DNA of 64,000 nucleotides from contig NC_133619.1 of assembly GCF_048593235.1 (NCBI RefSeq), forward strand, positions 65,114,454-65,178,453, written 5' to 3'. Positions 1 to 3,165 of this stretch are shown piece after piece. The position numbers and the translations under genes were made by a program. Origin of the DNA: Sminthopsis crassicaudata. Taxonomy: Eukaryota. The notes beneath the pieces are model-generated. The model did no database searches. It was given only the letters and a program-made list of their open reading frames with translations, and was not told the origin of the DNA. Every line of letters starts with the position of its first letter. Position 1 is the first letter of the stretch.

Positions 1-3000
1 TTCTAGACTGAGGATCTAGAAAAGACTAAAAAATGATTGAGAATATAGGAAAATGTTTTCTAGATTGAGAATTCAGAAGTTTAGGAATAACTGCTTTCTC
101 AACTGAGAATCTTGAAAAGACTGTAAAAAATGATTCTAAAATTGGAATTTAGGAAATCTAGGGGAAAAAGTACTTTTCACTTGTAAAAGTCTAGAAAAGA
201 GTGCTATCTTGACTGATAATTTAGAAAAGAATTTAGAAAAGAGTGTCATCTAGATAGAAAATTTGTAGCAACTGTCGAAAAAAGAGTGTTTTCTATATGG
301 AGAATCCAGAAAAGAATCTAGAAAAAAGTGTTTTCCAGATAGAAAGATCTAGAGAAGAATCCACAATCAAGAAAACACTCTTTTCTAGATTATATATTTT
401 TTTTTTTTTTTGGATTCTCTCAATACAAAACACTATTTTCTCCTTATCTCTTTTAATTAGATTAATGCTTGATCTGAGATCAGGATTGCTACCCCTGCTT
501 TTTTTTTTTTCTTTTAATCTCAGCTGAAACATAATGGATTCTGCTCCAGTCTTTTACCTTTACTCTAAATGTGTCATTCTACTTTAAATGAGTTTCTTGT
601 GAACAACAAGAAGTAGGATTCTGGCTTTTAATCCAATCTGCTATTCACTTCTCTTTTATGGGAGTGTTCATCCCATTCACATTCACAGATAAAATTACCA
701 TCTCTGTATTTCCTGCCATCTTGTTTACCTCCAGTTATATTTTTTTCTTCTCTTTCTTCGATTTCTTTTTCTCCAGGATTTTGTCACTGATCACCACATC
801 TCCAAATGGAAGTATTGTATTATCTTATATTGAGATTTTCATGATTGTGGATCCAGAAAACAATCTAGAAAAGAATGAGAATATAGAAAAAATGTTTTCT
901 AATGGAAGGACACAGAAAAAAATCTAGAAAAGATTGTAGATCCAGAAAAAAATTTAGAAGAGAATGTTTTCTGGATTGAGACTTCAGATAATAATCTAGA
1001 AAAGAGTTCTATCCGAAAATACTCTTTCAAGGTTCTTTTCTGCATTCTAAATCCAAAAAACACTCTTTTCTAGATTATTCTCTGAATCCTTTCTCCTTTT
1101 CTAGATTTGTTTCTGGATGCTCAATTTAAAAAATACTTTTTTCTAAATACTTTTCTGGATCCTTCCTCCTTTTCTAGATTTTTTTTAGATCCTCAACTGG
1201 TGGGGGAAATGTTCTTTTCTAGATTATTTTCTAGAGTCTCAATTTATAAAACAATCTCTTCTAGATTTTTCTGGATCCTCAGTCTTTCCTAGATCCTTTT
1301 CTGGATACTTTCTCTAGAAACAACTCTTTTCTAGATCTTATTCTAGAGTCTCAATTCAGAAAAAAGTTATTTTCTAGATTCTTTTGTGAATCCTCTCTCT
1401 AGGAAAAAAAAAAAACTCTTCTAGATTCTTTTCTGGATCCTCTTTCCTGGAGCATCATCTGTTTCCAGATTGTTGTTTAAAGCCTCAATCCAGAAAACAT
1501 TCTTTTCTAGATCCTATTATAGAGCCTCAATCCAGAAAACAACCTTTTCTAAATTCTTTTCTGGATCCTGTCTCTAGAAACATCTTTTTTTTTCCCTAGA
1601 TTCTTTTCTAGAGCCTCAATCAAGAAAACATTTTTCTAGATTTATTTCTGGACCCTCAAACCTTTCTAGATTATTTTTGGAGCCTCAATCTTTTCCAGAG
1701 CCTCAATTCAAAAAACCCCCACTGTTTTTGAGATTATTTTCTGGATCCTCAATCTTTTCTAAATTCTTTTCTAGATCTGTTTTTTATAAACAACTCTTGT
1801 ATAGATTCTTTCTAGAGCCTCAATCCAGAAAATGCTTTTTCTAGATTCTCTTCTGGTTCCTCTCTCTAAAAACAACTCTTTTCTAGATTCTTTTCTGGTG
1901 CCTCAATCTTTTCTGGATTGATTCTTTTCTGGAGCTTCAATCTTTTTAGTTTCTTGGCTGGATGGATCTTCAAGCTAGAAAACATTCTTTTCTAAAATCT
2001 TTCCTGGAGCCTCAACCTTTTCTAGATCCTTTTCCATAGCCTCAATCCAGAAAACATTCTTTTCTAGATTCATTTCTTGATTCTCTCTCTATTAAAAAAA
2101 ATATCGTCTAGATTCTTTTCTGGATCCTCTCTCTAGAAAAAAACTCTCTTCTAGATCCTTTTCTAAAGCCTCCATCCAGAAAACATTATTTTCTAGATTT
2201 TTTTCTGGATCCTCTCTCTAAAAAGAATTCTTTTCTAGATACTTTTCTAAAGCCTCAATCCAGAAAACATTCTTTTCTAGATTCTTTTCTAAATCCTCTC
2301 TCTAGAAACAACTCTTTTCTAGAGCCCCACTCCAGGAAAAAACCTCTTTTTTAGATTCTTTTCTGGAGCTTTAACCTTTTTTACATTTTTAAAAGAGCCT
2401 CAATTCAGAAAACACTTTTTTCATTGTTTTCTGAAGCCTCAATTTTGTCTAGATTCTTTTCTGGATTCATTCTCTTGAAACAACTTTTTTCTAGATTTTT
2501 TTCCTGGTGCCTCAATCTTTTCTAGAGTTTCAATAAAGAAAAAAGACACTGCTTTCTAGATTCTTTTCTGGGTTCTCAATCTTTTCTAGATCCTTTTCTG
2601 TATCCTCAATCCAGAATTTTTTCTAGATTCAGAAAAGCTAGATTGAAAACATCTAGAAAAGACTCTATAAGATAGTCTTTTCTAGACAATATGACTCAAT
2701 CTTGAGAGTTTAGAAAAGAATGTTTTCTAGATTGACAATACAGAAAAGAATCTAGAACAGAGTGCTTTCAAGATTGAAAGATCTGGAAAAGACTATTAGA
2801 TAATGCTTTTAGAATTAGCATTTAGAAAAGACCCTATGAATTAATACTTTCTAAACTGAGGATTTAGAAAAGCCTTTATTAAATGCCTTCTAGACTGAGG
2901 ATTTTAGAAAGAGTGCTTTAAATGCTTTCTAGTCTGAAAATCCATAAAACTGTCTAGAAAAGAGTACCTCCTAGAAACTGTCTAGAAAAGAGTACCTCCT

Positions 3001-3165
3001 AGACTGCACTTTCTACACCAAGAATTTAGAAAGTTTGCTTTCTAGACTGAAAATCCAGAAGAGATGTTAGAAAATAATGCTTTCCTGATTGAGGAATTAA
3101 GAAAGAGGGCTTTTTAAATTGAGAATCTAGAAAAGAGTGCTTTATAGGCAGAAGATCTAGAAAGG
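1..3165. repeat. Degenerate TCTAGA (XbaI)-cored tandem array with ~30 and ~42-43 bp units, in blocks of alternating orientation; continues off the left edge
   Basis: Dozens of copies of CTTTTCTAGATTCTTTTCTGG followed by AGCCTCAAT(CCAGAAAACATT) or ATCCTCTCTCTAGAAAACAACT in 1015-2625. The reverse complement of the same unit (e.g. AGAATGTTTTCTGGATTGAGACTTCAGATAATAATCTAGAAAAG near 960-1005) fills 1-365, 850-1010 and 2630-3165. Confidence 0.95.
430..760 (-). mobile_element. L1 ORF2 N-terminal (APE endonuclease) fragment embedded in the TCTAGA array
   Basis: Minus-strand translation MVILSVNVNGMNTPIKEK*IADWIKSQNPTSCCSQETHLK*NDTFRVKVKDWSRIHY, then (frameshift) KKAGVAILISDQA and INLIKRDKE. This matches the start of L1 ORF2; it carries stops and frameshifts. 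Confidence 0.9.

Follow-up and report, generated by a model that had tools for sequence, protein, structure and literature searches.

The first 3,167 bases of the 64-kb stretch of marsupial DNA analysed here (hereafter the window) are occupied by a tandem repeat array whose units repeatedly switch orientation. We confirmed that this array is real, and also that it is ordinary: its arrangement is not an unusual one, and we observed no evidence of transcription or function. As judged from its sequence, the array is probably an old, neutrally decaying one of minisatellite size, in which inverted motifs carried by the unit itself would have promoted inversions. On this reading it lies in a region rich in L1 and poor in genes, on a very large marsupial autosome. 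We infer that the array is neutral and that it is confined to a single locus.

The array was delimited with a profile of its 42-bp unit, which was built from seven units at 2017-2310 and searched against both strands of the whole window using nhmmer. This search placed 53 units, which fall into five strand-consistent blocks, and detected no unit outside positions 1-3167. Tandem Repeats Finder reported periods of 42 and 84 bp, and locally of 28-39 and 73 bp, with 66-89% matches. Both methods show a unit of constant length repeated head-to-tail. The GC content of the array is 31-34%. Position 1 already lies within the array, so that its left end is located beyond the start of the window and 3.2 kb is its visible length. 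Read in its T-rich orientation, the unit is ACTC-TTTTCTAGAT-TC-TTTTCTGGAT-CCTCA-ATCCAGAAAA-C, and it is composed of three copies of the 10-mer TTTTCTRGAT, two of them forward (M) and one reversed (m). Because the 10-mer is present in both orientations in each unit, inverted microhomology recurs approximately every 14 bp. Derivation of the unit from the 3' UTR of the neighbouring L1 or from the foreign sequence that interrupts the array at 453-836 was considered and rejected, since the alignment scores fell inside the shuffle distributions. We found nothing specific in the literature on a marsupial 42-bp satellite, and a 30-mer searched against metagenomes gave 0 matches, which is an uninformative blank.

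The five blocks differ in strand, size and variant content. The first (B1, 1-365) lies on the minus strand, is cut by the window start, and contains degenerate 39-42-bp units that are A-rich on the plus strand and carry an outer loop variant, CAG (ACTGAG). It is followed on the plus strand by about two T-rich units (B2, 366-452), in one of which the T-run has expanded to poly-T at 397-411. Beyond an interruption of about 385 bp at 453-836, four minus-strand units with an inner CAAT loop variant (B3, 837-1012) precede a plus-strand block of 36 units (B4, 1013-2617), which is the most homogeneous of the five, with a mean pairwise identity of 77%. An 84-bp, two-unit higher-order repeat within B4, at 2107-2323, is 89% matched and constitutes the most regular stretch of the array. 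The last block (B5, 2618-3167) is again on the minus strand, with degenerate units and the outer CAG variant. Two perfect repeats within this block, a 28-bp tandem duplication (2947-3003) and a palindrome with a 13-bp stem and a 9-nt loop (2652-2686), look like recent small events within an otherwise old array.

Given that the 10-mer motif is itself present in both orientations, we considered the possibility that the polarity switches are an illusion created by a palindromic motif. The loop between converging motifs is CCTCA in the plus-strand blocks and TGAGG, TGAGA or CTGAGG in the minus-strand blocks, and the motif series runs (MMm)n in B4, as compared with (Mmm)n in B1, B3 and B5. Because the motifs follow one another in a different order and the sequences between them, loops and spacers alike, are reverse-complemented, whole units have been inverted, and the illusion is ruled out. 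Orientation switches only 4 times among the 53 ordered units, indicating that the blocks are not noise, and base composition reverses at the same places as the block borders. The array thus contains blocks of units in opposite orientations, as the original prediction had proposed on the basis of alternating A-rich and T-rich stretches, and the borders it had given agree with those derived from our profile to within about 15-30 bases. The array that it had placed at 1-3165 does not, in contrast, include 453-836, where we found no unit and no 10-mer motif. Its observation that the outer blocks share a variant unit was borne out: the exact 12-mer CTAGACTGAGGA is present at positions 3 and 2890 only, and the CAG loop variant, which is a degenerate form of it, is found in 6 of 12 outer-block units as compared with 1 of 41 inner ones (Fisher p = 0.00025).

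Three junctions between oppositely oriented blocks are visible. At the first (J1, 362-377), the units meet head-to-head within a pair of 10-mer motifs, with the start of the minus unit extrapolating to 372 and that of the plus unit lying at 377. The second (J2, 1007-1020) is also head-to-head and has a 13-nt spacer; the in-register mirror identity of its arms is 65% ungapped and 73% gapped. The third (J3, 2616-2619) is tail-to-tail and falls at a unit boundary. These features bear on whether the switches could have been manufactured by fold-back chimeric long reads or by a misjoin within the repeat. Fold-back chimeras yield near-perfect mirror arms. Over 80 nt, however, in-register mirror identity reaches no more than 0.65 at J2, with 0.45-0.49 at J1 and J3, and the blocks also differ from one another in their periodicity and in the variants they carry. 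Exact repeats within the array extend to at most 35 bp in direct and 22 bp in inverted orientation, so that reads of at least 100 bp would be placed uniquely and collapse or misjoining is unlikely. Runs of N elsewhere in the window do speak for an artefact, yet 21-68% of the sampled 31-mers of the array recur in seven sequencing runs of one organism, produced by three studies; this sharing is not specific to the junctions. With arms that are not mirror copies and exact repeats that are short, neither a fold-back read nor a repeat-collapse misassembly is a likely source of the switches, and we assign little probability to an artefact of either kind. On this internal evidence, together with k-mer sharing that is not junction-specific, the junctions appear to be confirmed as real.

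We next consider how a real array of this type might have arisen. The units are old, with a mean pairwise identity of 68-77% both within and between blocks, and the relationships among blocks do not follow their orientation: identity is 0.747 for both B1-B5 and B3-B4, as compared with 0.68 for B3-B5 and 0.705 for B4-B5. Likewise, the CAAT loop is common to the inner blocks regardless of orientation, and the CAG loop is common to the outer blocks. This pattern suggests a layered array, in which a core that is younger, expanded and of opposite orientation lies between older CAG flanks. All three visible junctions show the same unit phase on both arms and lie at the M/m motif pair between units. 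Such a placement would be expected from exchange or template switching at the inverted 10-mers that each unit contains, although the statistics of this phase symmetry are weak (roughly 0.1 by chance for two events). Because the arms are not mirror copies at the junctions, the junctions are old.

Two inversions suffice to account for the four switches. We propose that inverted 10-mers, through recombination or replication template switching, would have allowed an internal group of units to be flipped; that the inner CAAT lineage would then have expanded between the older CAG flanks by unequal exchange or slippage; and that a second flip would have produced the short B2 and B3 blocks. A minimal history would thus comprise at least two inversions within the array, the 385-bp foreign insertion, and the insertion of an L1 at its edge. 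The inverted microhomology that recurs along the unit is a plausible cause of the inversions. According to this scheme, the polarity switches would be by-products of the history of the array, and any potential to form fold-back RNA would be a passive consequence, relevant only if the region were transcribed. The suggestion that the array is a rearrangement hotspot fits the inversions that we observe, as a statement about history, but not as a statement about function.

Inverted blocks could also be the native architecture of a mobile element, which would be a foldback-like transposon, or else a DNA transposon or retroelement with tandem repeats in an internal or subterminal position. Inverted blocks of short tandem subrepeats recall the Drosophila Foldback (FB) elements, with which the array also shares the ability to fold back. 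In addition, the array begins before the window, which leaves its termini out of view, and its right edge coincides with another transposable element. FB elements have paired arms at their termini, with target-site duplications on either side. The arms of the array are instead nested, diverged and grossly unequal, at about 365 or more, 87, 176, 1605 and 550 bp, and they are just 72-79% complementary. Two similar terminal inverted arms were not found in the visible array, where mirror register is weak at J2 and otherwise absent. The 64-kb window holds no second copy of the array and no other copy of its unit. Nor does the unit significantly resemble the L1 copies or the insert. We therefore regard a mobile-element origin as unlikely, and favour a decaying tandem array that has received foreign DNA and, at its edge, an L1.

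These two insertions can be described. The interruption at 453-836, which has no assigned strand, may be an L1-type fragment, which it resembles. Its portion at 476-521 includes a T-run, and self-BLAST revealed no second copy of 522-836 in the window. The right edge of the array is abutted by a decayed, 5'-truncated L1 3' end on the plus strand (3170-4247), comprising an ORF2 C-terminus with many stops and an A-rich tail; it shares about 75% identity with further L1 copies in the window. Within the 64 kb, no array units were found beyond this L1, and around the right edge of the array we detected no clear target-site duplication. Decayed L1 3' ends are located at 6510-7359, 37683-38121, 40992-41126 and 60109-60547 as well as at 3170-4247, with a mutual identity of approximately 70-80%.

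The inversions have a marked effect on predicted folding. We observed 196 inverted-repeat pairs of at least 25 nt in the array, the best of which extend over 58-93 nt with 71-86% complementarity. The minimum free energy (MFE) calculated for positions 1-3167 as RNA is -910.5 kcal/mol for the plus strand and -987.9 kcal/mol for the minus strand, as compared with -697.6 ± 8.5 kcal/mol for dinucleotide shuffles (n = 5). When the minus-strand blocks were turned over to give all units a common orientation, the value was -692.9 kcal/mol. This co-oriented control is approximately equal to the shuffles, indicating that the whole of the excess of about 213 kcal/mol (z about -25) is due to the block inversions and that the units themselves lack selected structure. 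Hairpins internal to the unit can likewise be rejected as the source of the structure, given the shuffle-like control and the small number of perfect 8-bp hairpins.

Most base pairs in the MFE structure are formed between blocks: nearly all of B5 is paired to B4, whose first part also pairs with B3, and the partners of B1 are B2 and the central part of B4. Gapped alignments of the arms give 71-79%, and over 130-300 nt the arms are 72-79% complementary. The 75 long-range helices (span greater than 200 nt) have a mean length of 7 bp, the longest uninterrupted helix overall is 25 bp, and 644 of the 1015 pairs (63%) are A-U. The folding that had been envisaged for a transcript of the array is thus borne out in silico as an energetic excess over shuffled sequence, but the duplexes are neither long nor clean, since the predicted helices are short and A-U rich and the arms are imperfect. 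The large DNA cruciforms suggested at the same time are not supported by our folding of the DNA. Windows of 150 nt centred on the junctions gave z values of -5.4, -3.8 and -4.5, as compared with -2.6, -3.6 and -1.3 for interior windows, and the best stems are one of 18 bp that encloses a 54-nt loop (990-1079) and the 13-bp, 9-nt-loop stem of the B5 palindrome.

Such folding raises the question of a functional structured RNA, which could be part of a lncRNA, a hairpin locus that serves as an ADAR or Dicer substrate, or a U/C-rich block that recruits pyrimidine-tract binding proteins through its CUUUUCU motifs, with an Rsx-like RNA included among these. In its favour are the folding excess, which comes entirely from the inversions, and the 64% pyrimidine content of B4. 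Furthermore, one sequencing run that we guess to be RNA contains 21% of the sampled 31-mers of the array, with none in two sister runs from the study to which it belongs; this could reflect either a DNA library or tissue-specific expression. None of the runs that share words with the array, however, is on record as RNA. The window contains no Rfam family, its first 12 kb remain poor in GC (0.31-0.34), and no coding ORF lies nearby. The helices are interrupted as well as short and A-U rich, and the co-oriented array folds like random sequence. A functional structured RNA consequently seems to us very improbable, and the scaffold and ADAR/Dicer roles put forward in the original prediction are unsupported speculation. 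Scarcely probable at all is the most elaborate version, in which the array would lie in a putative lncRNA or long intron and yield a multi-armed fold-back RNA of approximately 3 kb that acts as a hairpin-RNA locus (for ADAR editing or endo-siRNA) or as a sponge for pyrimidine-tract proteins, with its layout under selection in dasyurids.

Two known systems provide points of reference for such an RNA. Like inverted Alu pairs and hairpin-RNA loci, the array has adjacent inverted repeats with approximately 75-85% complementarity that could pair within one transcript. Unlike the array, those loci lie in demonstrated transcripts with documented editing or small RNAs, and the predicted helices of the array are shorter than theirs and A-U rich. 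The second system is Rsx. Marsupial X chromosomes are far smaller than 570 Mb, and the assembled piece that contains the array runs at least 570 Mb past the window. It is not X-sized, and this indirect evidence from chromosome size places the array outside the Rsx locus on the X and makes identity with Rsx very unlikely. In repeat domains 2 and 3 of Rsx, AAAG/GAAA and poly(A) k-mers are described as abundant (PMC6633197). By this description there is a loose resemblance, the array being a marsupial tandem repeat that is AAAG/GAAA-rich on one strand and carries U-runs on the other, but the Rsx repeats are not known to switch polarity.

The closest parallels that we identified for the decaying array favoured here are among the divergent satellites of human centromeres. 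Inversion breakpoints are numerous in monomeric or divergent alpha satellite, HSat3 and beta satellite (Altemose et al., doi 10.1101/2021.07.12.452052). It is therefore overstated that ordinary satellites always run head-to-tail, the premise from which the arrangement had been judged unusual. The array resembles them in having blocks of alternating orientation, high divergence between units, transposable element insertions, and a younger, homogeneous core between older flanks. It differs in scale, with 3.2 kb visible as compared with hundreds of kb to Mb, and in its 42-bp unit; it is also marsupial, has no known relation to these satellites, and lies in no demonstrated centromeric context. Strand switches, transposable element insertions and divergence are documented as hallmarks of old satellite arrays, and the present array displays them at a 3-kb scale.

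As it stands, the array matters little, being another decaying tandem array with inversions and transposon insertions, and the pattern has been documented at scale in the complete maps of human centromeres. It has modest value as a clean, small-scale case in which the inverted motif of the unit itself can seed strand switches and which displays a core-and-flank layering. It would be of interest only if the fold-back RNA were produced and had a use, or if marsupials proved to have conserved the layout of its blocks.

With respect to the remainder of the window, GC content is 29-43% along its whole length. Ten scanned ORFs of at least 92 aa contained no Pfam domains, and searches of the window for Rfam families and, using ARAGORN, for tRNAs returned none. 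Runs of N are located at 21740-21882 (143 bases), 29178-29328 (151 bases), 29400-29549 (150 bases) and 47064-47459 (396 bases). Two further repetitive tracts lie toward the right end. A TG-rich compound repeat of approximately 1 kb at 56708-57685 displays nested higher-order periods of 62, 124 and 248-291 bp with up to 92% matches, and a degenerate TCTCTG/TC-rich microsatellite of approximately 400 bp at 59129-59531 adjoins a TCTTC-rich stretch at 58995-59065.
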